Virus record (IMG/VR): IMGVR_UViG_3300023174_000033
Span: 372,001-436,000 of that record
DNA length: 64,000 bases
Reading direction: 5' to 3' (one strand)
A model generated the notes under the pieces. The model was not told the origin of the DNA, did no database searches, and worked only from the letters and a program-made list of their open reading frames with translations. The position numbers and the translations under genes were made by a program. Of this stretch, positions 19,543-63,917 are shown piece by piece (positions within the stretch are counted from its first letter, which is position 1; each line of letters starts with the position of its first letter).

Positions 19543-20139
19543 TTACTTCAAAAAATCTTTGAAATTAGTTATCCTCTTACTCTCTTGTTTTTTTAAAAAC
19601 TCTTTTTCTTCATCAGCTAAAGAATCATACCCAGAATCATTTATTTTATCTAGGATATCATCAATGTTCATTTGAGGTTCTTTCGAGTAAGTTTTCTGTC
19701 TTAATTGCTCAATTTCATCATCCTCATCTTCATCCTCTGTTGGAGCAGCTAGTTCACCTTCCTCCTCTTCATATGGCCAATTTGAATCATCTTCAGCCCA
19801 TTCGAAATCATCTTCATCTTCTTCGTAGTCAATACCCATTTTAGCTATGATTATGGCTAAATCATTTTTAACTTTATCCATCATTTTGAAATCAAACCAA
19901 TCAGTATTCTCTTCCAAGTAATCTAAGAATCTAACAAAATCATCAGATATCTCTCCTTTGTCATCAACTGAGAAAATGTCCAATAATTCATCATGGTTTA
20001 GAGCATCGCCTCTATCCTTTTCCATATCTTCTACGAATAATTCGAATTGTTCGTGTAGATCGTCTACTTGGTGGTCTTCTAATTCAAATTTTGCAACTGG
20101 AATGTTCTCAAAATTTTCAAATTTCATTAAGTGTTTCAT
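19543..20139 (-). CDS. Acidic hypothetical protein, tagged at both ends, with DUF6576-like helix pair
   Basis: MKHLMKFENF start, IDDILDKINDSGYDSLADEEKEFL, and KRITNFKDFLK end. Confidence 0.75.
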   Translation of the reverse strand: MKHLMKFENFENIPVAKFELEDHQVDDLHEQFELFVEDMEKDRGDALNHDELLDIFSVDDKGEISDDFVRFLDYLEENTDWFDFKMMDKVKNDLAIIIAKMGIDYEEDEDDFEWAEDDSNWPYEEEEGELAAPTEDEDEDDEIEQLRQKTYSKEPQMNIDDILDKINDSGYDSLADEEKEFLKKQESKRITNFKDFLK

Positions 20140-21818
20140 AGTTTATTTATAAAGTTTATGTATTGGTCAAAATTTGATAACATATCAGGTATATCATAAT
20201 TCATAATGCTATTTAAATATCTTAGTGGTTGATCTACATCACTAGCTTCTAAATAATAATTTACATTACTAGCTCTTTGACATTTTTTAAATATTGGACT
20301 ATTCCTATAACTATCCCTCATATTTCTTATTTTATTATAAAGGATAAGAGCATCTTCTATAGTTTCCAATGGAGCATCTTGAATTTTCTTAACTATTGTT
20401 TTATTTACTTCTATTAATTTATTAACAAGTTTGGTATGATCTTCATCTGGAGAATTCGTTATTAGATAATCAAGATTTTTCTTCATATTGTTATTATACT
20501 CTATATTTGCTTCCATTCTTTCTTTGACATATCTAGCTGCTCTATCTACATAACGCTGTTTGTCATAACTATCTGCAGTCATAGAATTCAAAATACTATC
20601 AAATATTTCTTCCATTGCACTAAAGTTAAGACCTTGTAGAATATAATGACCAGCATAACCAAATCCAAAAACCCTTTGGAATATCCTTCTCAAACTAGAA
20701 ATATCATCAGTTATTTTGATATTCTGAGATATTTGTTTAATATATCTTTCAAAGTTAGCAGATTTAATATCATTCGGTAATTTTAGGGCTAATGCTCCTT
20801 CTCTAGATTCTTGTCTCTTAGCTTTCGTAATTCCAGTGTCAGTGATACTACCACTGGCACTACCACTACTCATCAGTTTCTTCATCTTAACATAATCTAA
20901 AACCAAAGCGAAGTGACCTTGCTTTAAATATTCTTCAACATCTGTAGAATTGCCTAAAGTCATTCTCCTTATTTCAAGTGGAGCATTCCATGTGTATGGA
21001 TCTGGTTTAACTTCTTCTTCTTCAACACTTTCCTCTACTTTTAGTTTGAGTTTTTTCAAATTAGTGGATCCCCTAATATCACCTGGTGATGAAACAACCC
21101 AAGAATATTTTGCAATTTTTTTCCAATTAGTACCATTTGGAGCACTTCCTGATGATTTATTTTGGAGCATGTAATTCAATCTACCCTCTCTATATAACAT
21201 AGCAACTCTCCAACCATCATCACTACCATCACTTGGTCTAAAATAGAATATATCACCTGTGTTATAATCATTTAAGTCAGAATATGTTAAATTCTCTTTT
21301 TCTACTTCGTACTTATCTATATTATCATCTAATGTTCCAGTAACACCAATACCCTGAGATCTTATTTTACCATCAGTGGCTGTTGTGTTTACATATTTAC
21401 CATCTTTATCAAACCAAAATTTAACCCATTTTATAGGGAAACTAGTTTTTGGTTTAATACCAGTTCCTTTACAAACATCACATTTAACCCTTCTTCTACC
21501 TTTACCCCAAGTTCTCAAAACAGTTCCTTGGTTTTCATCACCAGTTGGTCCAGAACACATCTCACCAGGTATAGTATCAGATTCATTATCACATGGTTCA
21601 TCTTCCATATTTGCAGCTAATGACAAAGCTTTATTATAAGGTAGATATTGAAATAAATCATCAGACAATTTAGACATAGGGAAGTTCATCTTACCACAAA
21701 ACTCTTCCAAAATTGTCTTGAATTGTCCTCTTTGACTTTTGTTCACATAGTTAAAAACCTTAGTTAAGGTTTTGGATTCAAAAGCTTCAAATAGTTTTAA
21801 ATATTGTAGATTTTTCAT
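20136..21818 (-). CDS. Hypothetical protein with N-tag (YLKLFEAF) and one CxxCxGxG motif
   Basis: 560 aa ORF, stop/start overlap. Confidence 0.8.
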   Translation of the reverse strand: MKNLQYLKLFEAFESKTLTKVFNYVNKSQRGQFKTILEEFCGKMNFPMSKLSDDLFQYLPYNKALSLAANMEDEPCDNESDTIPGEMCSGPTGDENQGTVLRTWGKGRRRVKCDVCKGTGIKPKTSFPIKWVKFWFDKDGKYVNTTATDGKIRSQGIGVTGTLDDNIDKYEVEKENLTYSDLNDYNTGDIFYFRPSDGSDDGWRVAMLYREGRLNYMLQNKSSGSAPNGTNWKKIAKYSWVVSSPGDIRGSTNLKKLKLKVEESVEEEEVKPDPYTWNAPLEIRRMTLGNSTDVEEYLKQGHFALVLDYVKMKKLMSSGSASGSITDTGITKAKRQESREGALALKLPNDIKSANFERYIKQISQNIKITDDISSLRRIFQRVFGFGYAGHYILQGLNFSAMEEIFDSILNSMTADSYDKQRYVDRAARYVKERMEANIEYNNNMKKNLDYLITNSPDEDHTKLVNKLIEVNKTIVKKIQDAPLETIEDALILYNKIRNMRDSYRNSPIFKKCQRASNVNYYLEASDVDQPLRYLNSIMNYDIPDMLSNFDQYINFINKL

Positions 21819-23482
21819 AATACTGGTCCAATTATTTCTATTTTCACACCTTGTTTTTTAAGGTCATTTATATAAGATTTGTTTTCAGATAAAGATAACA
21901 AATCACCTGAAATAACTAATTTTTTCATCTTTAATCCTCTAATAGAAGGAATAAAATCCTCATCATTCAAAGTATAAACTAAGTGCAATTCTCCTATATT
22001 TCCCATCTTGGATAAATCTAATCTCGTTGTATCACAAGAAATAATTTGTAACTTATTAATATCTTCTGGTAGACTACCCAAAACATCGCCACGAAACTCA
22101 CACTTATCAAATGCATATGAATCACTTTTTAGATTTTTGAAAACTGAAAGGTCTTTCAATGTTAAAAACTTAAATTTAATCCAATCTGGCTGCATTGGTA
22201 TATTTAATAATCCATCAGGTAATACTGATGATTGAATAATAATTTCTTTTAACTTAGCCTTTGGTGACACTTTTATATTAGACCAATCGATATTAGGAGT
22301 TAAAGTAATACTTTTTGTGTTAACACCAATATATCTTTTTGTATCAATGCTTAATCTATCCATATAAGGACTATCAATATTACCAGCAGCATCCTCAGGT
22401 AAGTCAGGTGTGAAATAGTATGTATCTCCTCTTCCACTAACTGAAGACATTTGAGTATGTTTCTCAACAATTTTATCCATAGAATCTTTACATCTATCAG
22501 GATAACATCTATCAAAAAATATTTTAGAATCTTTTGGGTCAAATGCTTCTAAGTTTCTAATCATCATTCTACAAAGTGGTAATTGTTCAGAAATAACTTC
22601 ACCCTTCCATTTGATTGGTGTGTTGAATATAACAAAAGCTGGTACTGTATTTGGATCAAAAACATTTCCAATTACTTTACCTCTATACATGCCAGTATAT
22701 AAGTGCTGACAAGAAGAATAATACTTGGAAATAGACATATTTAAAATATCTTTTGGATTATGTTTAATGTATAAATACATATCCTTTGAGAAGGGATTAT
22801 AATCTACTTCATAAGAACCTCCACTCAGGTCCTCAGCGGCAATATTTACAACATCTCTTACATATCCAGAGGAAAATATAGTAGCATCTACTTTTGTAGT
22901 TGGGAAACAATCATTGTAATCAGAAAGAAAAGTATTGATATTAACTAAGTTTTTTGAAAAAATAACTTCACCAGCTTCTTTAGTTCTTTTAATTATTTTA
23001 TTATCTTCATCTTTTAATGGAACTCCATTTTCATCCCTAGAAATTACTTCAGTAGCTTTTGTTTCACCAACAGAAATCTTTCTGAAAATTGGTTTTGCCA
23101 AAATAGTTATTGAATCAATAGAAGGAAATTGAATATTGAAATCTTCAAGAATTGATTCATATCTATCTTTATCAGGGCCAGCAAATAAGTCGATTTTAAT
23201 AGAATCTCCTAATACAGTTTTAAAATGGTCAGGTAAAGCTTGAAATTGTTTATACATTTCTTTTAAGTCTGTATTAAAAAACTCTGATAAGATAGCCATC
23301 TTATCATCATGGTCTAACTTCCAAACACCTTGTTGTATTCTATCAGTTGGTTCTATCTCTTCATATTCGAGATATTCTGAACCCCATTTATCTTCCACCT
23401 CTTTTGCCTGTCTCGGAAGGATAACATCCTTTATCTTGGCTTCTTCGAGAAGGAACTTTTCTCTTTTTGATAAAAATTTCAT
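21815..23482 (-). CDS. Hypothetical protein with LRR-like C-terminus
   Basis: 555 aa ORF. Confidence 0.8.
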   Translation of the reverse strand: MKFLSKREKFLLEEAKIKDVILPRQAKEVEDKWGSEYLEYEEIEPTDRIQQGVWKLDHDDKMAILSEFFNTDLKEMYKQFQALPDHFKTVLGDSIKIDLFAGPDKDRYESILEDFNIQFPSIDSITILAKPIFRKISVGETKATEVISRDENGVPLKDEDNKIIKRTKEAGEVIFSKNLVNINTFLSDYNDCFPTTKVDATIFSSGYVRDVVNIAAEDLSGGSYEVDYNPFSKDMYLYIKHNPKDILNMSISKYYSSCQHLYTGMYRGKVIGNVFDPNTVPAFVIFNTPIKWKGEVISEQLPLCRMMIRNLEAFDPKDSKIFFDRCYPDRCKDSMDKIVEKHTQMSSVSGRGDTYYFTPDLPEDAAGNIDSPYMDRLSIDTKRYIGVNTKSITLTPNIDWSNIKVSPKAKLKEIIIQSSVLPDGLLNIPMQPDWIKFKFLTLKDLSVFKNLKSDSYAFDKCEFRGDVLGSLPEDINKLQIISCDTTRLDLSKMGNIGELHLVYTLNDEDFIPSIRGLKMKKLVISGDLLSLSENKSYINDLKKQGVKIEIIGPVL

Positions 23483-23526
23483 ATACTATATATATTTTGA
23501 CCCATTATATATTAAGTATATCAAAC

Positions 23527-28700: not shown

Positions 28701-30828
28701 CATTACCATCAGCAACATCTAATTGAACACTATAAATAGGTTGTGATGTTCCTTGAGCAGCACTTGAAACAGGTGTTGTGAAAGTGTGAGTGATTGTAGG
28801 TGTTGGTACATTTACAGGAGCAAATGATACACCTTTAAAAAGAACCTGTGTTGAAGCAGGTGATGTAATGATTGGAGAACCAGAAGCTGTAATGATATCA
28901 GAACCTGAACTTGTAATATTAGCAGTTACTGCTGAATTATCAGTAAACTTATAGATTTCATTAGCAGGTGATGTGGTTGATCCAAGACAGATATAGAGAA
29001 CTCTATTTCCACCTACAACTTGAACACCAATACCGTGCACAGTTCTACCAGTTGGATTTGGAAGATTTCCTCTTTTTGTCCAAACACCACCAGTATTTGA
29101 GAACTTAACAACACCTTGAGTTGCTGTTGCATTAGCATCAGCTACATACATAACATCAGGTGTTCCATTATCATCAACATCAGCGAAAACAAAACCTCTT
29201 GGGTCAAGTAGTTCTGTATTTGATGTAGTTCCACTCAAAATTGTGTGTGTATTTCCTGTGGTTGTTGGAAGACCAGCACCAACTGTTGAAATACCAATGT
29301 TCACAGATTGAGCACTTGAATAAAGTTGTGAGTTGTAAATAGCAGTTCCCCTAGTATTCACAGTAGTTGTTGAAACTTGGGTAGAAGTAGAAGCACCAAG
29401 TGCAACATATCTTGTACCACCACCAGTTCCAGCACCTCCTGTCCAGAATGCACTACCATCAACAGTAGCAGCTGAACGAATTGAGTTACCATCATAACCA
29501 TCACTAATACGAGTTGAAGTATTGATTGTACCATTTTGAGTAACCCTAGCAACAATCCTATTTGTTCCAGTAGCAGTACTTGAACTAATACCAATAACAC
29601 CTGGGATGTTATCATACCCACCAAAAGTAAGATATTGACCATCAGGTGAAAGGTTAAGGAAACCTTCGGTTGTAGAAGTACCACTCATAGTGAACTTCCT
29701 ATTTGAACCACTTGTTACAAATGGCATTGGTACACTTTGTACTAAAGTACCTGTGGTGGTGTATTCATCAATGAACACAGGTGCTGAATTTGTTGATAAA
29801 GTTGTACCACCAACTTCACCAACACGAAGAGTTAGGATATTACCAGCAGTGAAAGCAGAACCACCAGAATAAATCTGACCAGTTACAGCCCTTGAAATAG
29901 TTGGTGCTGGTGAAGATACAAAATCAACATTTCCAGTATATGTACCAACGGATGCTGATGTAGTAAGTTTAGCAAAAACTGTGGTTGCTGATACATTACC
30001 ACCAGATTGGTTTAGTGTTAAACTAGATGAAAAAGGACCAGTTGATGAAGTTGAGAATTCATATCCAGAAAGTGTACCCACGGTGATGTTGTTGGTTAGG
30101 TTATTACCACTTACTGATACCGATTGAACTTCTGAACCAAGACCAGAATTTCCATAAAACTTAGCAAATGTTCCAGTAACAGTGACTGTAGGCACAGGTA
30201 AAAAACCAGTTAGAGTAATATCATCAAGTCTAGTTGATGCAGTACCAGCTTTTAACCACCTAAGTTTTAGTCCATTGATTTGACCAGCAACTGGGATGGA
30301 GATTGCAGGTGATTGATACCAAGCAACAGCCGCAGTAGCTGTTTGAGAAAAGGTAAATGGAATATTTACCCAAGCAGTACCATTCCAATAATCTACTGTT
30401 AGTGTAGGTAATACTGTTGCACTTTCTTTTCTATATCCAAATTGGAGTGATAGAGAAGTGTAGGCAGATGCGTTTATACCCTCAATTGCAAAACCATACT
30501 GACCACTAGTGGAAGTTAAGAATACATTACCACCAGCCGAAGCACCAGTGTAACCGGTTGAAGTACTGGTGTTTCTGATATCACCAGGAGTTGTTGCTCC
30601 ACCACTTGTCATAGTAAGAGCAGTGTTTGTGAAACCGTTAGCTGTTTCATGAGCAGCAATTGTAGTAGTTGCAGAAGGTGTACCCATGGTTTCTTGAGTA
30701 ATAACGGGGGATTGCCCAAACACAGTAGGGGCACAAAAAAGTCCTGAGATCAGGACAGCGCAGAAAAGGGACAATACGTTACTAAATCCTGTTCGGAAAT
30801 TAGTACAAAAATTGTAAAGGTGTGACAT
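25786..30828 (-). CDS. Large secreted multidomain protein with T9SS type-A C-terminal sorting domain
   Basis: N-terminal signal peptide; Thr/Ser/Gly-rich beta domains; GWNLVMNP; C-terminal SVYPNPVKSDNITV...DVMGRVV...KGQYFIKV. Confidence 0.85.
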   Translation of the reverse strand: MSHLYNFCTNFRTGFSNVLSLFCAVLISGLFCAPTVFGQSPVITQETMGTPSATTTIAAHETANGFTNTALTMTSGGATTPGDIRNTSTSTGYTGASAGGNVFLTSTSGQYGFAIEGINASAYTSLSLQFGYRKESATVLPTLTVDYWNGTAWVNIPFTFSQTATAAVAWYQSPAISIPVAGQINGLKLRWLKAGTASTRLDDITLTGFLPVPTVTVTGTFAKFYGNSGLGSEVQSVSVSGNNLTNNITVGTLSGYEFSTSSTGPFSSSLTLNQSGGNVSATTVFAKLTTSASVGTYTGNVDFVSSPAPTISRAVTGQIYSGGSAFTAGNILTLRVGEVGGTTLSTNSAPVFIDEYTTTGTLVQSVPMPFVTSGSNRKFTMSGTSTTEGFLNLSPDGQYLTFGGYDNIPGVIGISSSTATGTNRIVARVTQNGTINTSTRISDGYDGNSIRSAATVDGSAFWTGGAGTGGGTRYVALGASTSTQVSTTTVNTRGTAIYNSQLYSSAQSVNIGISTVGAGLPTTTGNTHTILSGTTSNTELLDPRGFVFADVDDNGTPDVMYVADANATATQGVVKFSNTGGVWTKRGNLPNPTGRTVHGIGVQVVGGNRVLYICLGSTTSPANEIYKFTDNSAVTANITSSGSDIITASGSPIITSPASTQVLFKGVSFAPVNVPTPTITHTFTTPVSSAAQGTSQPIYSVQLDVADGNALLTGITVKTAGSYASSDFTSFKLVLSTDGTYDVTDPVLSTISTSTGAGQTLAFTGIGQNIPVGTTRYLFVVASVSGCASVGNSINITSTSLTSITYSNPLSVKVGTPSAGSTVTTSAGVLDDVASPNAVGGQPTVQLSWTNPACVSQIVIVAHTSSITGTPSGTYFGNTNYAAAPAFIGGGRVVYTGTASPQVITGLTLNQLYYFKIFVKFGSQYSPGVEVTATPTLVNIYSRGSGLSHTDAIWSLSPTGTPSTLAAIGGMNTARGLVIQNGDVVQLSQSGSAVTCRELIVNQGGTLIATGTTTADNKFLYINGDISNNGVIGTGATYNPICFGLEGNTIFIKGNGTTDIGRMRKNTVINQQTSLFINSNVNVRFTGGAGIYSNVDNSVLNTTVMEGKTLNMSDATTDFALDGFDGAATGQRGGTLTVNGNLTVGGTIYARNNNTTAGYSCGISTGINGNIQVGNLLTDITAGQGTSVTLTPASKIDVFGSLTVTSGTLNSNGVIILKSTGSSTARIANSTGTISGNITSERYVANDGWHFTGTVMSGQSLSDWRDDLPGAETQGPMPGVHTPNPGYFTSMIYEYDQNNNDAVPYSSTTTKGWIVPVTSNIDQYKGYRVYIKSGRTLDNTGTYGMNPSAITLNYNGSSSYPGWNLVMNPHLSAVNTSGFSWGAGVQQVVVIWNPITNQYEYQGTVGGLTGVTLNSSISPIASGQAFFVKCTSASTLTIPQTAKALSSGSFFRTATDNQQNALEIRLKDENSHIDASLFQFVEGSESGYETSLDASKLMNPDLNVYTMVGNEKLAINAMPGTDETMNIPLGFTVRNSGTYGFQFDGINLVNGYNKMYLKDNYNGIITEITGNTISFYSQSGEFNDRFEIIFTNALTSVNDLNKNDFVSVYPNPVKSDNITVRVPEKSGSVKIVVTDVMGRVVSNGFFKSNTVKVSKPTQKGQYFIKVETPKTCVTKTLIVE

Positions 30829-32180: not shown

Positions 32181-32196
32181 AGTAATATATACTTAT

Positions 32197-53145: not shown

Positions 53146-53166
53146 TCAAAATAAATATATACTTCG

Positions 53167-53577
53167 ATGGAGTATATAAAATTATTTGAAAGTTTTTTTA
53201 GTGGTGGAATGCCTGAAGAAATCACCAGTGAACAATGGAATGAATTGCAAATAACAGAAAAAGATGAATATGGAGAAATAATCAAAAACTCTCCAATACC
53301 ACCTTATCTTTTTAGAGAAATTGTTGCAATTGGTGGTGCGGAAAGATACTTACCAACTAGAGAAGGTGGATCTATTCAGATGCACGGCAGAAGACCAAAC
53401 ACTAAACATTTATATGTTGTGTATTTTACACCCAAAGATGATGCTCCTTTTTATTTAATAAGATTTTCAACAGATAATAACCCACCAGAAAGAGTACAAA
53501 AGGAAAAGGGTTTTGTCAAGCTTTATGTAGCTGATGATTTTGAACAAGTGAAAAACTTTTGTAAAGAAAATCTATAA
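53167..53577 (+). CDS. N-tag paralog family protein
   Basis: MEYIKLFESF; YVADDFEQV. Confidence 0.72.
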   Translation: MEYIKLFESFFSGGMPEEITSEQWNELQITEKDEYGEIIKNSPIPPYLFREIVAIGGAERYLPTREGGSIQMHGRRPNTKHLYVVYFTPKDDAPFYLIRFSTDNNPPERVQKEKGFVKLYVADDFEQVKNFCKENL

Positions 53578-55430: not shown

Positions 55431-55673
55431 TTGTTCAAGAGTTCAGACTATTTCAACGTCGTATGTATCGAAAATTGTAAATCTACCAAAGAATTCTGGC
55501 CAATAACAATTGGTAAGCATTATCAAATCAAAAGTGGTTGGAAAACTTCAAATATTGCCTTCTATAACATAATAGCTGATGATGGAAAAGAATGGATAAT
55601 ACCATCTACTTTTTTCAAATATGTAGATGAAGTAAGAGAGATAAAGATAGAGGAAATCCTTACTGTAAATTAA
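55431..55673 (+). CDS. Small CI..GKxY family protein with C-tag
   Basis: VVCIE..ITIGKHYQI..FKYVDEVREIKIEEIL. Confidence 0.7.
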   Translation: MFKSSDYFNVVCIENCKSTKEFWPITIGKHYQIKSGWKTSNIAFYNIIADDGKEWIIPSTFFKYVDEVREIKIEEILTVN

Positions 55674-56401
55674 CCAGCTTTCCTCCTGCCAAGTGAATCT
55701 ATACTCCCATCATGCTTGAACTCACTAACCATTCCAGAAAGATAAATAGTTCCAAAATGGTAATCATCTTTCGGGTCAAATAAATAGTAATCATAACCCG
55801 TGAATATCTTATTATAGTCACTCATAAGTGTTCTCCACTCATTAGTTCTTCTTCCCACCGCCCATATATTCTTCGAATTTTTATAGTCATTGATGGGTAC
55901 ACTTAACAAATCATAATTATTTCCCTGTTTATATGGACTTGACTGTAACCAATCCTCAAATCCATCCCAACCATCAACTAACCACCAGTCTTTGACAAAA
56001 TAAATATCTTTGGTTCCTTTCAAAGTAAGGTGACTTGCATCTACTGGTAGTTCAGTTTGAATTAAAAAATAATCATCTTGGTATTTAGCTAGACTCATAT
56101 CTTTCCTAAATCCATTTGGAATTTCAACTTTCCAATTTACTTGATTGATTTTTCCTGAAGTACCAGTTGCTGGATAGAGTGATCGACTAACAAGTTGTAG
56201 ACCAGTTAGTTCTGGTTTTAAATATTTAGTAAATAACTTTTCAATTTGTAATAAATCACTTGAATTTAGTTCTTCTGTGCCCGGACTCTTTTCCATATCG
56301 AAGAAAAGGTCATTGAAAAGGTCTTGACCTAAATTTACATAGGTTGAACTTTTCAAATACTTTTCGTGTCTTGACTCATTGAATTTCCTTAAATATCTCA
56401 T
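55670..56401 (-). CDS. N-tag family protein (two-domain)
   Basis: MRYLRKFNES; QDDYFLI; TAATATATA at 56410. Confidence 0.75.
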   Translation of the reverse strand: MRYLRKFNESRHEKYLKSSTYVNLGQDLFNDLFFDMEKSPGTEELNSSDLLQIEKLFTKYLKPELTGLQLVSRSLYPATGTSGKINQVNWKVEIPNGFRKDMSLAKYQDDYFLIQTELPVDASHLTLKGTKDIYFVKDWWLVDGWDGFEDWLQSSPYKQGNNYDLLSVPINDYKNSKNIWAVGRRTNEWRTLMSDYNKIFTGYDYYLFDPKDDYHFGTIYLSGMVSEFKHDGSIDSLGRRKAG

Positions 56402-56419
56402 AGATAGTGTATATATTAA

Positions 56420-56641
56420 CTATCCGAGCAATATATTCAATTTATCATTTCTATGTTCATTTAAACGCTTGAACATTTTTATAGGATAGTGTCCCATTCT
56501 ATCATAGTCATTTACAACCCAACACAAATCAATATCATTAGTCAAAGTTAGATCGTATACTTTACCTATTACGAATGGACCTTCAATTATGGAATCCTCC
56601 CAATAGGTATTGTCTATACAGACTGCTTTTATTTTTTCCAT
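56420..56641 (-). CDS. Small CI..GKxY family protein with C-tag
   Basis: AVCID..IGKVYDL..FKRLNEHRNDKLNILL. Confidence 0.75.
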   Translation of the reverse strand: MEKIKAVCIDNTYWEDSIIEGPFVIGKVYDLTLTNDIDLCWVVNDYDRMGHYPIKMFKRLNEHRNDKLNILLG

Positions 56642-56642
56642 A

Positions 56643-56966
56643 TTAAAGAGTTTTAATCCATTCTATAAGTAGTAATGATACTTTATATCCACAGAATGCT
56701 CCAAGTGCGGATGGAATTGGAAATACAATTAATTTACCTAAATCAGTAACATATTTAGGTCTATTAACAATTTTCCCCATAAAAAAGTAATAAGCTAAAT
56801 AACCAAGTAAAACAGCAATATCTGTTTTAGTAGCTATAAAAACCACAAGAGTTGCACCAATAAAACCAAAAGTAAAGTTATCTCTTACACCCTCCCATAC
56901 TTCATATGGTGTTGCTTCATTAATTTCTTTAATTATCTTCTTATGTAGTTCTTTAGTCTTTCTCAT
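56643..56966 (-). CDS. Membrane protein
   Basis: Three hydrophobic helices; ATG overlaps the MTase stop. Confidence 0.7.
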   Translation of the reverse strand: MRKTKELHKKIIKEINEATPYEVWEGVRDNFTFGFIGATLVVFIATKTDIAVLLGYLAYYFFMGKIVNRPKYVTDLGKLIVFPIPSALGAFCGYKVSLLLIEWIKTL

Positions 56967-57712
56967 TTTTGTTTTTTCCATTCTTCAAAGTGATCGATTT
57001 GTGGTTGTGATAATTCAGATCCTATATAACTCATTCCCCTTTCAATACAAGCTTTAGCAGTAGTTCCAATTCCCATAAAACTATCATATACAAGTGAGTT
57101 GGGTTTAGCATAAATATCCATTAACTTAGTAATAAGTTCAGTAGAAAAAGTAGCTTTGTTTAGGGGATTAGAACCATCATTATTTCTAGCTTCAATAAAG
57201 TTATAGATATTCTCATAGTTAGCTTGCCCAGTTCTTTCAATTCTACCAGTTATTTTCTTATTAGCATCAAAGGTTTTGAATTCATTTTTCCTAGAAAAGA
57301 CAAAGATATATTCAACTATTCTTGTAAGTTTATTCTTACTCACATTATTTGGAATAGCATTTGATTTTTTCCAAACGATACAATCTGCTGTAATAAAGTT
57401 AGTTCTTCTAATAATATCAGCGATAACTAACCAAATTAAATGTGTTTTCTCACTTGAATAAGACATATTGTAAAGAACACAACCATTTGGTTTTAATATT
57501 TTATCATAACCATTAAAGACATCACAAGTCCAGTCAATATATTCTTGGTCTGTTTTGAAGTCTTGGAATATGTCATACCTACTGGAATATTTATCTGCTG
57601 CGCCAACTCTGGATGTATTATATGGTGGTGATGTAATGACCATATCAACCTGTCCTTGAAGTTCAGGTCTATTCATTGTATCAAAGCAGGATTCGTTATA
57701 AATTATATTCAT
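56963..57712 (-). CDS. Orphan DNA methyltransferase, beta class (N4-C/N6-A)
   Basis: ITSPPYN motif IV precedes VYDSFMGIGTT motif I. Confidence 0.92.
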   Translation of the reverse strand: MNIIYNESCFDTMNRPELQGQVDMVITSPPYNTSRVGAADKYSSRYDIFQDFKTDQEYIDWTCDVFNGYDKILKPNGCVLYNMSYSSEKTHLIWLVIADIIRRTNFITADCIVWKKSNAIPNNVSKNKLTRIVEYIFVFSRKNEFKTFDANKKITGRIERTGQANYENIYNFIEARNNDGSNPLNKATFSTELITKLMDIYAKPNSLVYDSFMGIGTTAKACIERGMSYIGSELSQPQIDHFEEWKKQK

Positions 57713-58098
57713 TTTAGTAGTTGTTCTATTCTTTGGTTTCTTTTTTCTTGTGGTTTTAAAACTGGATTATACTTGAAGTATCTATCAAACTTTAGTAACC
57801 AATATAGTGAATAAGGGTCAAAGTAAGTGATTAAGTTTCTATTCAAATAAACATTTTTTTGTAGCTCATAATGTCCATTTCTCCATCTATAAAACTTTCC
57901 TGTTATGTATAGGTTTTCATCTTCAGTTATTGTATTTCCATCAACACTTTCCCAAAGGTAAAACTTTTTATTAGGAAGGTCGTCATATACCTTTTTATAG
58001 TATTTCCATTTATTAAAGTTAGTCATAATAGAAGCAAACACAAATGGAATGAAACTAGCAATGACTACAACAAAAATATTAAAATGTAATGTAATCAT
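57709..58098 (-). CDS. Membrane-anchored hypothetical protein with C-tag (RNQRIEQLL)
   Basis: ORF track. Confidence 0.7.
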   Translation of the reverse strand: MITLHFNIFVVVIASFIPFVFASIMTNFNKWKYYKKVYDDLPNKKFYLWESVDGNTITEDENLYITGKFYRWRNGHYELQKNVYLNRNLITYFDPYSLYWLLKFDRYFKYNPVLKPQEKRNQRIEQLLK

Positions 58099-58101
58099 TT
58101 T

Positions 58102-58422
58102 TTAGATAAGGTCTTTATCCTTTAGACGTTTTAGATAGGAAGTAGCACCAGTATCGCCAGACATATACCATTCAAGTTCTTTTGCTCTGAATGCGCAGTT
58201 GTTTAGGTCTTTGATTAGTTTATGAACTTCATTTAAGATAAGTTCTCTTTCTTCTGGTGTTGCGTCACCAATTCTATCATACTCTACCATAGGTCTTTTA
58301 CCAAAACCATTGTGGGTATAATCCTCACCTTCATATTTGCCATCATTAACAAACATATTTTCAATTTCATCAGCCAACATTTGGACTTTGAAATAACCAT
58401 AATCAAATGAACCTCCCGACAT
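58102..58422 (-). CDS. Conserved phage hypothetical protein
   Basis: MSGGSFDY...ELEWYMSGDTG; TATCTTTG at 58441. Confidence 0.75.
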   Translation of the reverse strand: MSGGSFDYGYFKVQMLADEIENMFVNDGKYEGEDYTHNGFGKRPMVEYDRIGDATPEERELILNEVHKLIKDLNNCAFRAKELEWYMSGDTGATSYLKRLKDKDLI

Positions 58423-58459
58423 AACTTTTATATTTTTTTACAAAGATAAGGGATTAAGT

Positions 58460-58675
58460 TTAATTCTCCAAAATCTTTTGTAAAAAGTATTCTCTAATGA
58501 TTGACTTATCCCAAAAATATTTAGCTGGTATATCTACTCGTCTCCCAAGATTATCAATGGTTAAATAAAGAACACCATGTTCCATTTTTACTTCAACCAA
58601 TTCATATTCATCACCTAACTTTATATTAGCGTGATTTGCTGGTGAATAGTGTTCCTTAATACATTTGATTATCAT
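58460..58675 (-). CDS. Array gene 17: small CI family protein with C-tag
   Basis: IKCIK..LGDEYEL..REYFLQKIL. Confidence 0.7.
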   Translation of the reverse strand: MIIKCIKEHYSPANHANIKLGDEYELVEVKMEHGVLYLTIDNLGRRVDIPAKYFWDKSIIREYFLQKILEN

Positions 58676-58995
58676 AGGTTTAATATCTCATCTATATCAT
58701 CATCCCGTTTTTGTTCTTTGGATGGTAGTGCCACATCTACTAAATATACTTTGAAGTTAAGGATTTCTTCTTGGATACTACCATCTTTCATATCATAAAA
58801 CTCTTTATAAACAAACTTACCTTGGTAATCATTTGGATATTTACTATTATCTGGCACAAAATCAACAAACTCACCCCTTTGTCTTGGTACACCGCAATAA
58901 TCATCAAGATATTCTCTGATGTATTTGAGGGTTGGACCAACACAGATTGGTGTACCATCTTGTAATACCACATGGGAAAATTTTACTACTTTCAT
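58672..58995 (-). CDS. Array gene 16: unrelated body with C-tag
   Basis: ..RDDDIDEIL. Confidence 0.7.
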   Translation of the reverse strand: MKVVKFSHVVLQDGTPICVGPTLKYIREYLDDYCGVPRQRGEFVDFVPDNSKYPNDYQGKFVYKEFYDMKDGSIQEEILNFKVYLVDVALPSKEQKRDDDIDEILNL

Positions 58996-58996
58996 T

Positions 58997-59272
58997 TTAC
59001 AAAGATAATATATTTTCTATTTTTTCCTCTCTAATTTCTTCAATTGTTTTGAACTCTGAAATAGGGTAGTAGTATTTGGTTGTTCCCTTATCAGATTTTT
59101 CAATCAAATAATATCTTTTATCATCGTTTATTTTGGATGAAATATGACTACCAAACCAAACATAAGGATTTGTGTAAGGAGCCAAGGTATCTTCTCTTGG
59201 TAAGGCATTATACACTTTACCATCAGTTAATTCATCCCACTCAACATCAGTTTTGATTTTAATAACTTTCAT
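58997..59272 (-). CDS. Array gene 15: T.GKxY family with C-tag
   Basis: LTDGKVYNA..REEKIENIL. Confidence 0.72.
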   Translation of the reverse strand: MKVIKIKTDVEWDELTDGKVYNALPREDTLAPYTNPYVWFGSHISSKINDDKRYYLIEKSDKGTTKYYYPISEFKTIEEIREEKIENILSL

Positions 59273-59508
59273 TCTAATATTTTTTCTATTTGTTTTTCTC
59301 TGAATTCTATTATATCAATAAAGTATTCGTCAAATGTTATTTTACCAATAGAAAATCTATGTCTGCCAGTATTCACATCATATAGTTCAACTTTTACAGG
59401 TGGTCCAAATCCTTCATTACCATCATAGTTTAGGAAATAAGTAAAAGTATCTCCCTTTTCTACTGGTGTTTCTTTCATTGGTGATTTAATGCAAATACAT
59501 TTATTCAT
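59269..59508 (-). CDS. Array gene 14
   Basis: CICIK..KGDTF..REKQIEKIL. Confidence 0.72.
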   Translation of the reverse strand: MNKCICIKSPMKETPVEKGDTFTYFLNYDGNEGFGPPVKVELYDVNTGRHRFSIGKITFDEYFIDIIEFREKQIEKILE

Positions 59509-59735
59509 TTTAATATTTCATCTAATTGTTGTTGTCTCCATTTAGTTACTTCTACCATCTTAAACCTATCAGTATTAAGCATCCATTCACTAAATTGTTT
59601 TACTTTTAATTTATCATTTTTGGAAAAATAATTACCACTAACAAAAAGAACATTATATATTTTACCAGGTGTGAAATAGTGACACCTTGAATATTCATAT
59701 GGGTCGTTTTTAATACAGATATATTTTAGGTTCAT
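59505..59735 (-). CDS. Array gene 13
   Basis: YICIK..FTPGKIYNV..RQQQLDEIL. Confidence 0.72.
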   Translation of the reverse strand: MNLKYICIKNDPYEYSRCHYFTPGKIYNVLFVSGNYFSKNDKLKVKQFSEWMLNTDRFKMVEVTKWRQQQLDEILK

Positions 59736-59977
59736 TTTAATAGTTCATCTATTTGTTTTTCTCTGTATTCTTCTATAAAATCAAAATCTTCTATTGGCCA
59801 ATAGGAAAACTGGTCTCTATCATCTTCAACAATATAAGACATAATAACTTTATCTTTACCCGCTAAATAAATGTATTGACCTGAACCATATAAAGGTAGT
59901 GCTTCATATATTTTTCCATAAGTCAATCTTTCCCAGAAAGGTTCATTACCTGGTTTTCTTTTATACCTCAACTTCAT
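59732..59977 (-). CDS. Array gene 12
   Basis: LTYGKIYEA..REKQIDELL. Confidence 0.72.
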   Translation of the reverse strand: MKLRYKRKPGNEPFWERLTYGKIYEALPLYGSGQYIYLAGKDKVIMSYIVEDDRDQFSYWPIEDFDFIEEYREKQIDELLK

Positions 59978-60225
59978 TTTAATAGTTCATCTATTTGTTT
60001 TTGTCTAAAATCTTGTATATCCTCAAAATGACTTTTGAAATGTTTTTCTATTAGACCAAAGTCATACATACCATCTTTAACATCATAAAGATGAAAAGTT
60101 ATTTGGCGATTTCCAAGTGTATCACCAATTTTATCTACTTCATACCAGAACTTATCACCCTTTCTAACAGGTGTTCTTTTTCCTAAAAATTTCCTATCTT
60201 TTATACACACACAATAATTTCTCAT
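59974..60225 (-). CDS. Array gene 11
   Basis: CVCIK..KGDKF..RQKQIDELL. Confidence 0.72.
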   Translation of the reverse strand: MRNYCVCIKDRKFLGKRTPVRKGDKFWYEVDKIGDTLGNRQITFHLYDVKDGMYDFGLIEKHFKSHFEDIQDFRQKQIDELLK

Positions 60226-60578
60226 TCTAAAATCTTTTTTATTTTTATTTCTCTAATTGTTTCTTTACTGGCATACCTTTCTATAATAGATTTTTTTGGG
60301 TTGAAAGTCATAGGAGTAACTTGAAAACAAGATGGTTCAGATAGTAATTGGTCTATGGTTTCTTGTCTATATTCGTCAAGTGGTTTGAAATGTTCCAAAA
60401 AAATATCTGATGGAAGTCCAAGTATATAACGCAACCCACTCACATGGTGGTCTGATTTTTGATAAAGGTTCCATTGTAGTTCTTTTTTCATAGGTGGTAA
60501 AACCAAAAAAACATCACCTATTTTTGGTTTATGTTGAGTATAATACTGCCTATTTTTTATACAAATGTATTGTGTCAT
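60222..60578 (-). CDS. Array gene 10 (two C-tags)
   Basis: YICIK..RQETIDQLL..REIKIKKIL. Confidence 0.72.
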   Translation of the reverse strand: MTQYICIKNRQYYTQHKPKIGDVFLVLPPMKKELQWNLYQKSDHHVSGLRYILGLPSDIFLEHFKPLDEYRQETIDQLLSEPSCFQVTPMTFNPKKSIIERYASKETIREIKIKKILE

Positions 60579-60805
60579 TCTAAAAACTTTTCTATTTGTT
60601 CTTGTCTAAATTCATCAATCAATTTGAAATAATATTCTGGTACTACAATTGGGTGTCCTGTATCCGCAGTGACACCATATTGACTATCAAAATGAAAACT
60701 CCCATAATGTTTAACTTCATAAACCTTTCCAATAGTTAGTATTGCATTTCTACCATTTTTTTGTGGAGTATCCCAGTTTTTATTTCTTATACAAATTGCT
60801 TTCAT
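60575..60805 (-). CDS. Array gene 9
   Basis: AICIR..LTIGKVYEV..RQEQIEKFL. Confidence 0.72.
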   Translation of the reverse strand: MKAICIRNKNWDTPQKNGRNAILTIGKVYEVKHYGSFHFDSQYGVTADTGHPIVVPEYYFKLIDEFRQEQIEKFLE

Positions 60806-61005
60806 TTAAGTAACTCTTCTAATCTTATATTTCTCAATTCTGTAAGTGGTGTGAACATTTTTTCAATATAATGTTCTTTGGCTCCACCATCATCAACAAT
60901 ATAAATCCATACTACACTATTCCTATGGACTTCATAAATCTTACCTGGTGTGATATTAAATTGGATACCATTGGGTGTGATATTGGTTTTACAAACTACT
61001 TTCAT
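60802..61005 (-). CDS. Array gene 8
   Basis: VVCK..ITPGKIYEV..RNIRLEELL. Confidence 0.72.
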   Translation of the reverse strand: MKVVCKTNITPNGIQFNITPGKIYEVHRNSVVWIYIVDDGGAKEHYIEKMFTPLTELRNIRLEELLK

Positions 61006-61217
61006 TTTCCTAAAATATCATCAATGTTTTTATCCCTTTTATCAGCCTCATAGTTTTCCATAAAGTATTTTATCTGCTCTACTATATTCTTATCATTTTT
61101 TTCATTATTTTTAATCCTATCTTGTAGAGCAAAAAGTAAGGAATGTATTTGCTCCTTGAAATCTTCTTTTACAAAGAGTTTTTCCAACTTTTCTCTGAAT
61201 TCTGGGTCCAAGTTCAT
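61002..61217 (-). CDS. Array gene 7: helical unrelated body with C-tag
   Basis: ..RDKNIDDIL. Confidence 0.7.
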   Translation of the reverse strand: MNLDPEFREKLEKLFVKEDFKEQIHSLLFALQDRIKNNEKNDKNIVEQIKYFMENYEADKRDKNIDDILGK

Positions 61218-61444
61218 TTTAGTAGTTCTTCTAGTTTTTCTAATCTAACTTCATCAAGGGGTTTAAACCTACCTCTTCTTAAAGCAACCTCAATCCCATC
61301 ATTACCTATTATATAATATACACCATTATCATTAAATGTTGAATTCAGCCTATCTGTAACTTGGTAGATTTTACCAGAAGTCACAAAATCCATACCCAAT
61401 GCCTCATTAGTAACACCAGTATCATCTATACACACAACTTTCAT
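61214..61444 (-). CDS. Array gene 6
   Basis: VVCID..VTSGKIYQV..RLEKLEELL. Confidence 0.72.
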   Translation of the reverse strand: MKVVCIDDTGVTNEALGMDFVTSGKIYQVTDRLNSTFNDNGVYYIIGNDGIEVALRRGRFKPLDEVRLEKLEELLK

Positions 61445-61650
61445 TTTATTAATTGATTTATCTTATCTTGTCTTATTGATTGGAGTGGTTTAAACATATA
61501 TTCTGTATATTCACTATATTTGATTTTATATCCTTTATCATCTATGATATATTTAGCAAAGAAATAGTCATGAGGTGCTGTTATTACTTCATAGATTTTA
61601 CCTTCAGTAAAATTAAATATTTTGGTATTTATATTACAAACTATTTTCAT
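61441..61650 (-). CDS. Array gene 5
   Basis: IVCN..FTEGKIYEV..RQDKINQLI. Confidence 0.72.
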   Translation of the reverse strand: MKIVCNINTKIFNFTEGKIYEVITAPHDYFFAKYIIDDKGYKIKYSEYTEYMFKPLQSIRQDKINQLIK

Positions 61651-61874
61651 TTTAATAATTCGTCTAACTTTTCTTGTCTATATTGTTCTAACTCAATAAA
61701 TCTCCTTTTTGATAAAATCACTATTTTTCCACTATCATCATACAACTTATATGATTGTTCAGAACCATCATCAATTAACTCATATACTCTACCCAAAGTT
61801 AAAAAGATTTCTATTTTATCTGGGTTTTTACCCATCTTAGGAAAGGGATAATCATCTATACATACTACTTTCAT
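61647..61874 (-). CDS. Array gene 4
   Basis: MKVVCID at 61874..LTLGRVYEL..RQEKLDELL. Confidence 0.72.
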   Translation of the reverse strand: MKVVCIDDYPFPKMGKNPDKIEIFLTLGRVYELIDDGSEQSYKLYDDSGKIVILSKRRFIELEQYRQEKLDELLK

Positions 61875-62086
61875 AACAAAGTTTTTTCTAATTGCATTTC
61901 TCTCCATTCATCCAAAGATACAAATGATTTTGGACTTGTATAAATTGTTTCTCCAATATCATTTGTTATTTTCATAGCCAGTTTATCCTTGTTGGATTTC
62001 CAAATAGGGTTCCAAGAGTCAAGTGCTTCATATTGTTTCCCATATGTAAGATTGGGACAATTTTCTTTGATAAAAATAACTTTCAT
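61871..62086 (-). CDS. Array gene 3
   Basis: LTYGKQYEA..REMQLEKTL. Confidence 0.72.
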   Translation of the reverse strand: MKVIFIKENCPNLTYGKQYEALDSWNPIWKSNKDKLAMKITNDIGETIYTSPKSFVSLDEWREMQLEKTLL

Positions 62087-62325
62087 TTTAATAATTCGTC
62101 TAACTTTTCTAATCTAACTTCATCAAGTGGTTTGAACCTGTCCATCCTTAGTGATACTTCTTTACCATTATCACTGATAATATTTACCATATGAATACCT
62201 GATGGTTTATGTATACCACCTTTATTTGGATGGGAAATCATTTCATATACTTTTCCCTCTGTAATATGTTCATGTGGGGAAACCCCACCTTCTCTGATTT
62301 TATTGTTTATACAAACTAGTTTCAT
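62083..62325 (-). CDS. Array gene 2
   Basis: LVCIN..ITEGKVYEM..RLEKLDELL. Confidence 0.72.
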   Translation of the reverse strand: MKLVCINNKIREGGVSPHEHITEGKVYEMISHPNKGGIHKPSGIHMVNIISDNGKEVSLRMDRFKPLDEVRLEKLDELLK

Positions 62326-62648
62326 AGGATTTCTTCTATTTTTTTATTCCTAACTTCTTGGATGTTTTCACTATCAACCCATTTATTAAAATCTTCAACT
62401 GCGTTTTCTGAAGCATGTTGGTGGTAATACTCTTGATGTTTCACAAGTGATGGGTCAAGAGTTCCACCTTTCCCATCTGAATATGGAATAGGAACTGGAC
62501 TTACTTTATCTTGGATAAGACCAGGATAATGTTTTGTATATCCACAAGGTTTGCAAATAAAACGAATGCATCTATCATAAGAATCGTCTTTGATTTTTCC
62601 ACCACATTTTGGGCAAGGTTTTAAGTATTGTTCGCTATAACTTCCCAT
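62322..62648 (-). CDS. Array gene 1: zinc-ribbon protein with C-tag
   Basis: PCPKCGG..CKPCG..RNKKIEEIL; TATTTTTG at 62653-62660 upstream. Confidence 0.72.
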   Translation of the reverse strand: MGSYSEQYLKPCPKCGGKIKDDSYDRCIRFICKPCGYTKHYPGLIQDKVSPVPIPYSDGKGGTLDPSLVKHQEYYHQHASENAVEDFNKWVDSENIQEVRNKKIEEIL

Positions 62649-62671
62649 ACCACAAAAATAATATATAATCT

Positions 62672-63043
62672 ATGAAATACCTAAAAATATTTGAAAGTTT
62701 TAATCAAGGGAAATATTATTGGCCAATAACTGCAACTGAGTTCAATAAGTATGTAGAAACATTTGAATTTACAGAACAAGAAATTGAAGCAATAAAAAGT
62801 ATCTGTGATAAAAGATTTACTGAAATGGATTTTGAATTTTATACAAGCTGGGATATACCACCAACTGGTTCAATAAATTTGGAGACAAATACAGGTGGTC
62901 AAAACTTATATACTATAAGAACAAGAATAGACAAAGAAAATGACGAATATTTCGCAGTCGCATATAATATTGATAGGACACCAGAATATTACAAAGCAGA
63001 CCAATTGGAGGGTCTAATAAAACTTTTGGAAGATATCTTATGA
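62672..63043 (+). CDS. N-tag paralog family protein
   Basis: MKYLKIFESF; NDEYFAV; YYKADQLEG; TAATATATA at 62659. Confidence 0.78.
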   Translation: MKYLKIFESFNQGKYYWPITATEFNKYVETFEFTEQEIEAIKSICDKRFTEMDFEFYTSWDIPPTGSINLETNTGGQNLYTIRTRIDKENDEYFAVAYNIDRTPEYYKADQLEGLIKLLEDIL

Positions 63044-63486
63044 AATACCTAAAAATATTTGAAGAGTTTTCTGATTTCTATAAAAAAATACGAAATGACG
63101 ATATCAATCCTAAAAAAATCATTGATATTGATTTAGGTATACAGAATATGATAGAATCAAGATTAAAGCACAAATCTACTTTTTCATATTCCATATACCA
63201 ACCATACATGGGTAGTATGTTGAGAGGAAATCAAAGGAAATTAAAGATTGAAACAGATATAATCGTTACACATGGTTCTCCAGATAAAATGGTAAAACCC
63301 TTAATCAAAAAACACAATACTATGATTGTTGAGATGGAAGATGAGTGGTTTATAGTTTCTAACCAGACAAGATTTGATGGTGGTGGTTCTTGGGCTACTC
63401 CAAAGTCATTGGATATTGAATTATATGAATGTGACCAAGAAGAAGGACTTTTGGAGTTATTAAAGAAATTAGATATAATAAAATGA
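63040..63486 (+). CDS. N-tag paralog family protein
   Basis: MKYLKIFEEF; EDEWFIV; YECDQEEG. Confidence 0.78.
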   Translation: MKYLKIFEEFSDFYKKIRNDDINPKKIIDIDLGIQNMIESRLKHKSTFSYSIYQPYMGSMLRGNQRKLKIETDIIVTHGSPDKMVKPLIKKHNTMIVEMEDEWFIVSNQTRFDGGGSWATPKSLDIELYECDQEEGLLELLKKLDIIK

Positions 63487-63917
63487 AATACCTAAAAATA
63501 TTTGAAGGTAGTGAAAGTTTTTTTGGAACCTCCAACTATGGTGATTTTGAAATAAATAAACCCGCCCATAAAGTCATATTCAATATGTTCATATGTGATT
63601 ATGAATCACCAAATTGGAAAGAAAATGTTGAAATCCTAAAAGGTATAAACTTCCCAACAAGTATAGAAAAATCAAAAGGTTATCATAAAGGTTTATCTAT
63701 TCAAGTTTTACTTGATATGGACATCCAATCAGCAAAAGAGTTCTCTGATGAAATCGTCAATATGTTTTTAGATAAACCACTTATCGTTATTGCTGAGGTA
63801 GATGTAATAATGAAAAAACAACCAATAGGTTATTACTTTGATAAAGACCTATGGGAACCTGGTAGATATTTTGATAAACTAATTGAAAGTGGTGAAAAAG
63901 GAGTATTTATACATTAA
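63483..63917 (+). CDS. N-tagged protein with an unrelated body
   Basis: MKYLKIFEGS. Confidence 0.75.
   Translation: MKYLKIFEGSESFFGTSNYGDFEINKPAHKVIFNMFICDYESPNWKENVEILKGINFPTSIEKSKGYHKGLSIQVLLDMDIQSAKEFSDEIVNMFLDKPLIVIAEVDVIMKKQPIGYYFDKDLWEPGRYFDKLIESGEKGVFIH

Follow-up and report, generated by a model that had tools for sequence, protein, structure and literature searches.

A conserved N-terminal peptide on dozens of proteins of an uncultivated huge phage is a candidate capsid-targeting signal of the T4 kind

In bacteriophage T4, the first 10 residues of an internal protein are enough for it to be incorporated into the head, with residues 4 and 7 serving targeting and residues 8 and 10 serving processing; the head protease, gp21, cleaves behind L/I-x-E, and internal proteins copurify with the scaffold protein gp22 (PMC9026906). 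T4-type internal proteins are very diverse, and only their targeting sequence is conserved (PMC3012670). The T4 signal, MKTYQEFIAE, was invoked in an earlier note on the DNA studied here, and we confirmed it on two genes of the T4 record. That DNA (the window) is a stretch of 64,000 nucleotides (nt), bases 372,001 to 436,000 of the 464,605-bp IMG/VR virus record IMGVR_UViG_3300023174_000033, which represents an uncultivated phage (32% G+C; CheckV completeness, 98%). The earlier note had observed that about 15 proteins of the window begin with variants of MKYLKxFE (here called the tag) and had proposed that the tag is an address for packaging into the head. Its count was too low: the genome holds 40 to 53 such proteins, and the tag is widespread among uncultivated huge phages.

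A simple gene call over the whole genome yielded 514 genes (145,924 residues), covering 94% of the sequence. The genome-wide motif census that the note had recommended was run on these genes, and the 40 that scored ≥10 on a position-weight matrix derived from the tagged genes themselves make up the tagged set used below; only ~7 truly internal windows reached this score in 138,728 positions. In its extended form, the consensus reads M-K-[YH]-L-K-x-F-E-x-F, and Gly often comes next. A loose regular expression matched 32 N termini in the whole genome, compared with 0.045 in 200 shuffles, and the strict core K[YH][LI][KR]x[FY][EN] occurred 26 times at N termini and 0 times internally. Clustering of N termini that used no motif returned one cluster of 50 genes. 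Another 12 genes begin with aromatic-x-x-[FY]-[LIVM]-x-E, a T4-like variant (0.6 expected), and one of them starts with MRFQKFYEFIAEK. Including such variants, 46 to 53 genes (9 to 10%) carry an N-terminal tag, that is, about 1 protein in 11 of the genome. The tag is real and far beyond chance. All 15 open reading frames (ORFs) listed in the earlier note exist, and 12 begin with a clear M-[KR]-[YH]-[LI]-[KR]-x-F-[EN] (Table 1); the tag of the gene at 20136 is offset by 4 residues, and those at 32197 and 46797 are weak variants. The internal or C-terminal copies that had been seen in the genes at 8651, 17445, and 19543 have matrix scores of ≤1.7, which is background level.

The proteins that follow the tag had been described as unrelated. 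Genome-wide they are truly diverse, but within the window a single diverged family (the main family) accounts for 9 of 15. The most informative tagged gene lies outside the window, at genome positions 30741 to 31310. Its AlphaFold model is confident (predicted local distance difference test [pLDDT] score of 92; <50 for residues 1 to 6), and its top structural matches were all from the ADP-ribosyltransferase (ART) superfamily (VIA-align Z, ~7): RES, MbcT, ParT, the catalytic domains of diphtheria toxin and tankyrase, and a domain of the cyanophage A4 pre-ejectosome. Across 25 homologs, His16 and Glu169 do not vary, and the match to the Pfam ART-PolyVal family (PF18760) is 19.6 bits, under the 31.2-bit cutoff. 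Homologs include domains inside proteins of 1,600 to 3,800 amino acids (aa), and those giant proteins lack the tag; distant stand-alone homologs align only from residue 13 or 14 on. We liken these giant proteins, by size range and not by domain makeup, to the giant multidomain "polyvalent proteins" with ART domains that are predicted to be injected with phage DNA (PMC5512222). Other tagged proteins gave weak Pfam matches to HAD, nucleotidyltransferase, and 2H-phosphoesterase families, and a Pfam scan of 10 tag proteins of the window found nothing for 9. An AlphaFold2 model of the main-family protein at 40586 (mean pLDDT, 78; <50 for residues 1 to 8) is beta-rich, and a Foldseek search with it against PDB and BFVD returned no significant match. 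In both models, the tag is the sole N-terminal segment with a pLDDT of <50 and the fold begins right after it; the tag thus appears, in the models, to behave as a portable peptide.

Tagged genes belong predominantly to one promoter class. The earlier note had remarked that most of them, like the neck and fiber genes, follow AATATATA, and this was borne out: the sequence lies ≤45 nt upstream of 115 genes, including those for capsid, portal, sheath, baseplate, and fiber proteins. There are 163 copies in the genome, 118 of them ≤40 nt upstream of a start codon on the same strand. All five identified structural genes (capsid protein, portal, tail sheath, baseplate wedge, and tail fiber) have it at 25 to 33 nt, and it precedes none of the seven replication and nucleotide genes (both ribonucleotide reductase subunits, a DnaB-like helicase, a second helicase, DNA polymerase, clamp loader, and an adenylosuccinate-synthetase-like gene). 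Units led by AATATATA hold 36 of the 40 tagged genes and 175 of the 474 others (Fisher P = 3e-11). Its spacing falls genome-wide into two classes, one of 16 to 33 nt, which includes the structural genes, and a sharp peak at 4 to 5 nt (~34 genes). A distance of ≤8 nt to the start codon was found for 17 of 40 tagged genes versus 33 of 474 others. The 4- to 5-nt spacing suggests nearly leaderless mRNAs, and no Shine-Dalgarno-like sequence is visible upstream of the tagged genes. A single-sequence search of the genome for the late sigma factor gp55 of T4 gave no match, a result that is uninformative. Judged by their promoters, the tagged genes would belong to the structural, late-type class and would be expressed when heads are built.

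The heads in question are predicted to be of the T4 type. A T4-type head module lies at ~246 to 253 kb of the genome, outside the window. Its capsid protein matches Pfam Gp23 (E = 1.9e-25) and phrog_138, its portal protein matches phrog_213, and the N terminus of the capsid protein resembles the propeptide of T4 gp23. The head maturation protease forms the first part of a 690-aa fusion (Table 1). It has thousands of metagenomic homologs, and many of those at 65 to 77% identity carry a precomputed assignment to PF03420, the T4 gp21 family; a direct Pfam scan of the genome for PF03420 gave no match, and the link to the gp21 family rests on PHROGs and homolog annotation. The scaffold-like C-terminal part of the fusion contains eleven tandem 14-residue repeats, YSEY[IL]AENLDKNIA, each with [IL]-A-E, followed by an acidic stretch. 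The conserved hydrophobic residues of the tag are Leu at position 4 and Phe at position 7. The 120-aa protein encoded at genome positions 189430 to 189792, which starts with MRFQKFYEFIAEK, has EFIAE in common with the T4 signal and [FY]IAE in common with the scaffold repeat, and among the candidate internal proteins of this genome it is the one most like those of T4.

The tag is not confined to this phage. The closest public capsid proteins are those of LR745206 (634 kb, 68% identity) and LR756502 (642 kb, 66%), followed by those of a 636-kb and a 735-kb genome, LR756500, Lak phages, and Tenacibaculum phage PTm1. The 634- to 735-kb genomes represent the "Mahaphage" clade, for which Bacteroidetes hosts have been predicted (PMC7162821). 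Strict tag starts numbered 15 in LR745206 and 8 in LR756502, versus 0 for a reversed-pattern control. Strict DNA patterns had indicated that the tag is absent from LR756500 and the 735-kb phage (LR756501), a view overturned by unbiased clustering, which found that each has its own version. The first 400 kb of LR756501 gave a cluster of 39 proteins starting with MIKKFKLFE or MIxx[FY]xx[FY][ILV]xE, the latter including MIxxYxxFINE (33 to 53 copies), and LR756500 gave a cluster of 41 starting with MKYIKEYEEFLxE (34 to 41 copies in 400 kb), a version that contains YEEFILE, compared with YQEFIAE in T4. Most tags in these two genomes end in [ILV]-x-E, the T4 protease motif, at residues 9 to 13. A motif related to AATATATA, A/T-ATATATA, is enriched before the tags of distant relatives that have their own tag versions. 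Lak-B5 gave no match to the strict DNA pattern, the only one applied to it. Versions of the tag that are recognizably akin are used by related phage lineages.

In LR745206, LR756502, and the 735-kb phage, scaffold repeats with a 42-nt period likewise lie just upstream of the capsid gene; neither LR756500 nor PTm1 showed the repeat pattern. Co-occurrence of tags with EY[IL]AE scaffold repeats was considered and dropped, because LR756500 is tagged yet does not match the repeat pattern. As a separate observation, several tagged proteins of LR756501 (for example, 5130-5426, 132555-132890, 297634-297945, and 338419-338715) have a common DPYGEE motif 10 to 15 residues past the tag; they may constitute a separate family, or DPYGEE may represent a second conserved element.

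A scan of IMG/VR found at least 118 tag stretches. Among the matches listed, nearly all mark the beginning of a real ORF, the bodies are diverse, and TTTAATATATA plus 4 nt stands before many of them. Of 40 such contigs examined, most are rated 7 to 37% complete, those rated ≥76% complete span 155 to 482 kb, and 15 carry a Gp23-type capsid gene; judging from completeness and size, most of them are fragments of ~150- to 700-kb genomes. In the present genome, a homolog was present for 0 of 22 (strict definition) or 7 of 39 (loose definition) of the tagged proteins from the two closest relatives, compared with 22 of 40 genes of the head module region and 11 of 65 neighbors of tagged genes. The notion that tagged bodies turn over faster thus held only in part: tagged genes lie in variable regions and are no more variable than their neighbors.

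The best explanation, which we regard as probable, is that the tag acts as a T4-type capsid-targeting propeptide, in an expanded version of that system with ~40 to 53 cargo genes (8 to 10% of the proteome). Tagged genes would be transcribed together with the structural genes from the −10-like AATATATA, the association with this promoter being observed and the timing deduced from it; where AATATATA lies 4 to 5 nt before the ATG, the mRNAs would be nearly leaderless. The first 10 to 13 residues would form a free amphipathic peptide, unpacked in the models, with conserved hydrophobic residues at positions 4 and 7, followed by an acidic one. During prohead assembly, this peptide would bind the scaffolding core, probably the C-terminal repeats of the 690-aa fusion, by analogy with T4 internal proteins and gp22. 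The gp21-family protease would then break the scaffold at the eleven [IL]-A-E repeats and remove the tags at [LIV]-x-E. The cargo would stay in the head with the DNA, enter the next host together with it, and act before phage gene expression, for example through ADP-ribosylation by the ART-like protein.

The analogy with T4 drawn in the earlier note is supported by the T4-type head module, the late-type promoter class, the position of the tag outside the fold, the ART-PolyVal-like body, and the L/I-x-E of the relatives, but the proposed cut after Glu8 fits the T4 cleavage rule (L, I, or V two residues before the Glu) in only 20 of 40 tags. Several further points weigh against a capsid-targeting function. 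Most tags in this genome lack the later [ILV]-x-E of the relatives, and, with half of the tags departing from the T4 rule, cleavage in this genome is uncertain; a motif [LIVM]-x-E ending at residues 6 to 15 is found in 21 of 40 tags versus 21% of other genes. Strings similar to MKTYQEFIAE (MRFQKFYEFIAEK here and MKYIKEYEEFILEA in LR756500) are too short for a significance test. PTm1, the only cultured phage with a related capsid protein, is without the tag, the largest N-terminal cluster in its whole genome having 3 members. The AATATATA class also holds GIY-YIG-like genes (homing-endonuclease type, by their N-terminal motifs) and lipoprotein-like genes, so that late timing alone does not mean presence in the virion. 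Several tagged bodies resemble ordinary metabolic enzymes (HAD, an isochorismatase-like N-terminal strand motif, and a kinase). The median pI of the tagged proteins (5.2) is slightly more acidic than that of the others (5.7), whereas IPII and IPIII of T4 are basic. Finally, fifty cargo species would be, to our knowledge, far beyond any known system. Cofolding of the 690-aa protease-scaffold with a tagged protein scored 0.00, which counts neither for nor against binding.

The tag might instead be a recognition peptide for another partner or destination, such as a chaperone of phage or host origin, a degradation-timing protease, an assembly factory, or a site on a membrane. All that the evidence shows is a conserved free peptide, strictly N-terminal, on late-class proteins of diverse kinds, with no physical tie to the head; many of the bodies are enzyme-like, and the T4 cleavage rule holds for only half of the tags here. 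We nevertheless consider this explanation unlikely, because no alternative receptor is suggested by the data and the tag is like the T4 signal in position, in length, in its hydrophobic positions, and (in the relatives) in its terminal L/I-x-E. Moreover, the tag co-occurs with a gp21-type head module, and ART-PolyVal-like cargo fits delivery into a host. Export signals in particular do not agree with the tag. A Sec, Tat, or lipoprotein signal peptide was sought by its positively charged N-terminal region with a hydrophobic stretch of ≥10 residues behind it, and the tag, which alternates charged and aromatic residues before Gly or acidic residues, lacks such a core; signal-peptide-like starts form a separate N-terminal cluster in the 735-kb phage.

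All tagged proteins might alternatively be members of one fast-evolving family, with the tag as its best-kept remnant, such as a structural or oligomerizing helix, and no address role. The main family (~145 aa, with a C-terminal W[FY]xV...YYECDGFDxLxxLL motif) lends some substance to this idea. In the window, it accounts for tandem arrays; the genes at 38192, 40152, 40586, 41473, 62672, and 63040 are joined by BLASTP, and those at 39715, 41032, and 53167 only by motif and alignment. With the tag removed, BLASTP joins 11 proteins genome-wide, and alignment adds a few more; the 79 metagenomic homologs are all unnamed. The tag is the most conserved block of the family, M1, K2, Y3, L4, K5, F7, and E8 being nearly invariant among paralogs that are 20 to 36% identical. 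The same tag, however, is found on a protein with an ART-superfamily fold, whose distant homologs, tagless giant-protein domains included, align only from beyond it, as well as on HAD-like, nucleotidyltransferase-like, and other bodies, and it lies outside the fold in both models. A common-descent explanation of this kind is improbable.

The codons behind the tag speak to its level of action. Leu4 is encoded by TTA, CTA, CTG, CTT, TTG, and CTC and Tyr3 by TAC (11 genes) and TAT (9 genes), and codon usage at the conserved positions is overall near that of the genome. Of the 40 tagged genes, 18 have no promoter of their own and sit in tandem operons with overlapping stop and start codons, where the tag is retained. 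Together, the synonymous variation and the retention of the tag by promoterless genes indicate selection on the peptide. It is thus highly improbable that the conserved start is an RNA-level initiation or initially transcribed sequence for nearly leaderless late transcripts in a non-Shine-Dalgarno host, with the peptide as a by-product: tight promoter spacing, the lack of a visible Shine-Dalgarno-like sequence, and the mildly A/T-biased tag codons (AAA, TTT, and GAA) favor it, but Leu4 and Tyr/His3 vary freely at synonymous sites, operon genes keep the tag, the versions in relatives keep amino acid properties and not bases, and the tag is absent from the 33 other genes with equally tight spacing.

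If the tag is a capsid-targeting propeptide, its principle is known from T4, and what would be new is the scale (~50 genes per genome), the lineage (uncultivated huge phages), and the existence of lineage-specific versions. A literature search for the motif strings and for capsid targeting in huge phages found no paper that describes the tag. For most genes of huge uncultivated phages, no role is known. A head-loading address would tell, for ~50 genes per genome, where the product is located (inside the virion) and when it acts (the first moments of infection), and the same assignment would extend to many genes in public viral contigs. It would scale up the T4 internal-protein system more than tenfold, give giant capsids a concrete use, and provide both a large pool of candidate counterdefense proteins and an aid to huge-phage annotation. 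More tentatively, we propose as a plausible generalization that huge phages of this lineage, whose predicted hosts are Bacteroidota, use a lineage-specific "cargo code" that coevolves with the protease-scaffold core and marks 6 to 10% of genes for loading into the head. Were such a code to exist, the sequence of an uncultivated phage could reveal its full set of injected effectors, proteins of choice could be loaded into such capsids by means of the tag, and the delivery of dozens of ready-made enzymes may partly explain why these capsids are very large.

The tagged genes of the window and the other features mentioned in this study are listed in Table 1. Two adjacent genes of the genome with AATATATA leaders may represent a duplicated, unusually long sheath gene, as the product of the first (269815-274029) matches tail sheath families. 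The collagen-like fiber genes have a G+C content of 38 to 43%, versus ~30% across the remaining window, and the first of them is the tail end of a 2,227-aa gene whose start precedes the window. The PurA/PurZ-like protein could bear on purine metabolism or on a modified DNA base. The run of small genes at 56420 to 62648 looks like an array of early-type genes, with tagged late-class genes on both of its flanks. Contigs that are 90 to 100% identical to parts of window positions 38000 to 43999 were present at low depth in one freshwater metatranscriptome run, for which contigs only were available; the finding suggests fresh water as a habitat of the phage or a close strain, and the library could also hold DNA.

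Table 1. Tagged genes and other features. Positions are those of the window unless marked "genome." In the text, window genes are named, as in the earlier note, by the low end of the ORF; genes on the minus strand encode the tag at the high end.
Position	Strand	Product	N terminus or tag	Remarks
19543-20139	-	198 aa, very acidic	MKHLMKFENFEN..., clear	Third gene of unit led from 23489-23496; residues 154-183 (C-terminal 30) match Pfam DUF6576 (E = 4.6e-7; 30.3 bits vs cutoff of 27.3)
20136-21818	-	560 aa	Tag 4 residues in (MKNLQ-YLKLFEAFES)	Matrix score of 16.0 at residue 4; a 542-aa viral-contig ORF with a similar N-terminal run (by eye) starts directly with MKYLKLFEAFES
21815-23482	-	555 aa	MKFLSKREKFLLEE, degenerate, tag-like	First gene of the 19543/20136 unit; AATATATA at 23489-23496, 6 nt before ATG; no PHROG match
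32197-32721	+	174 aa, GTG start	VKFIKSYKIFEAD, weak variant	AATATATA at 32184-32191, 5 nt before GTG; two extra residues in tag, same version on homologs of the ART-like protein (MKHIKTYKIFEN, MKFLKTYKLFES)
38192-39022	-	276 aa	MKYLESFDVFGSG..., clear	N-terminal half is main family; own promoter, AATATATA at 39028-39035, 5 nt before ATG
39715-40155	-	146 aa, tagged paralog	MKYLKRFNENLS..., clear	ATG start at 40155
40152-40589	-	145 aa, tagged paralog	MKYLKLFENMFG..., clear	
40586-41035	-	149 aa, tagged paralog	MKYLKRFESIFG..., clear	Main-family representative
41032-41469	-	145 aa, tagged paralog	MKYLKRFENFYS..., clear	Within AATATATA-led unit of 41473-41898
41473-41898	-	141 aa, first gene of five-gene tandem array of tagged paralogs	MKYLKLFESMFG..., clear	True start is ATG at 41898, not upstream TTG at 41931; AATATATA at 41903-41910, 4 nt before ATG
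46797-47105	-	102 aa	MSKIARFEEFGKNEE, weak variant (MSKIARFEEFG)	AATATATA at 47133-47140, 27 nt upstream; below matrix threshold
53167-53577	+	136 aa, diverged main-family member	MEYIKLFESFFSGG..., clear	AATATATA at 53154-53161, 5 nt before ATG
55670-56401	-	243 aa	MRYLRKFNESRH..., clear	Different body, related to gene at genome 16574-17278; AATATATA at 56410-56417, 8 nt before ATG
62672-63043	+	First of three tandem tagged genes	MKYLKIFE, clear	Main family; AATATATA at 62660-62667, 4 nt before ATG
63040-63486	+	Second of three tandem tagged genes	MKYLKIFE, clear	Main family
63483-63917	+	Third of three tandem tagged genes	MKYLKIFE, clear	Unrelated body
45-4484	+	Large collagen-like tail-fiber repeat protein		Many repeats
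4497-6074	+	Large collagen-like tail-fiber repeat protein		Many repeats
49398-52262	-	Large collagen-like tail-fiber repeat protein		Many repeats
12099-13334	-	PurA/PurZ-like protein, 411 aa		phrog_1211 "2-aminooxy adenylosuccinate synthetase," full length, E = 2.5e-112
56420-62648	-	Run of ~25 small genes (67-249 aa)		Stops and starts overlap, unbroken; no AATATATA upstream of any
Genome 189430-189792	+	120 aa	MRFQKFYEFIAEK	Outside window; AATATATA 4 nt before ATG
Genome 247865-249937	-	Head protease-scaffold fusion, 690 aa		First 340 residues match head maturation protease phrog_207
Genome 269815-274029	+	~1,400 aa		First 22 residues identical to those of the next gene; AATATATA 26 nt upstream
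Genome 274183-278325	+	~1,400 aa		Adjacent to the preceding gene; AATATATA 26 nt upstream

The closest known system is the CTS (capsid-targeting sequence) of T4, carried by IPI, IPII, IPIII, and Alt. Both are peptides of ~10 residues at the extreme N terminus of otherwise unrelated, fast-changing proteins, both have hydrophobic residues at positions 4 and 7 with an acidic residue next, and both are found with a gp23/gp20/gp21-type head. The tags of the relatives end in L/I-x-E, as that of T4 ends in I-A-E, and the ART-like cargo here has a counterpart in Alt. The differences are those of number (40 to 53 tagged genes per genome versus about four in T4) and of sequence, since MKYLKxFExF cannot be confidently aligned to MKTYQEFIAE and often has no canonical cleavage site. 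In addition, the cargo here is mildly acidic and includes enzyme-like proteins as long as 560 aa, protease and scaffold form one fusion protein, and packaging and cleavage are predicted. Encapsulins work alike, in that a short conserved terminal peptide sends unrelated enzymes inside an HK97-fold shell; these, however, are bacterial compartments whose cargo peptide, usually located at the C terminus, binds directly to the shell protein and remains uncleaved, and they involve neither DNA nor injection. The phiKZ-like giants (phiKZ, 201phi2-1, and SPN3US) are likewise large phages with many head-internal proteins that are cut after Glu by a diverged gp21-type protease, and they have conserved N termini on diverged paralogs such as gp53 and gp54 of SPN3US (PMC5694885, PMC9026906). 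Their propeptides are mostly >100 residues long, with an S/A-x-E motif and no single short tag, whereas those proposed here are a uniform 10 to 13 residues. The Dar proteins of phage P1, which counter host defense, are packaged into the head in the course of morphogenesis and are injected (PMC9024508, PMC12810830). Loading in P1 is hierarchical, protein on protein, and is not known to involve a short tag shared by dozens of proteins. Polyvalent proteins of phages and conjugative elements (Iyer et al. 2017) resemble the tagged proteins in their diverse effector domains, ART-PolyVal included, and in their predicted delivery with DNA at the onset of infection (PMC5512222), but there the domains are joined in one giant polypeptide, whereas here they are separate small genes, each with its own tag and often with its own promoter.

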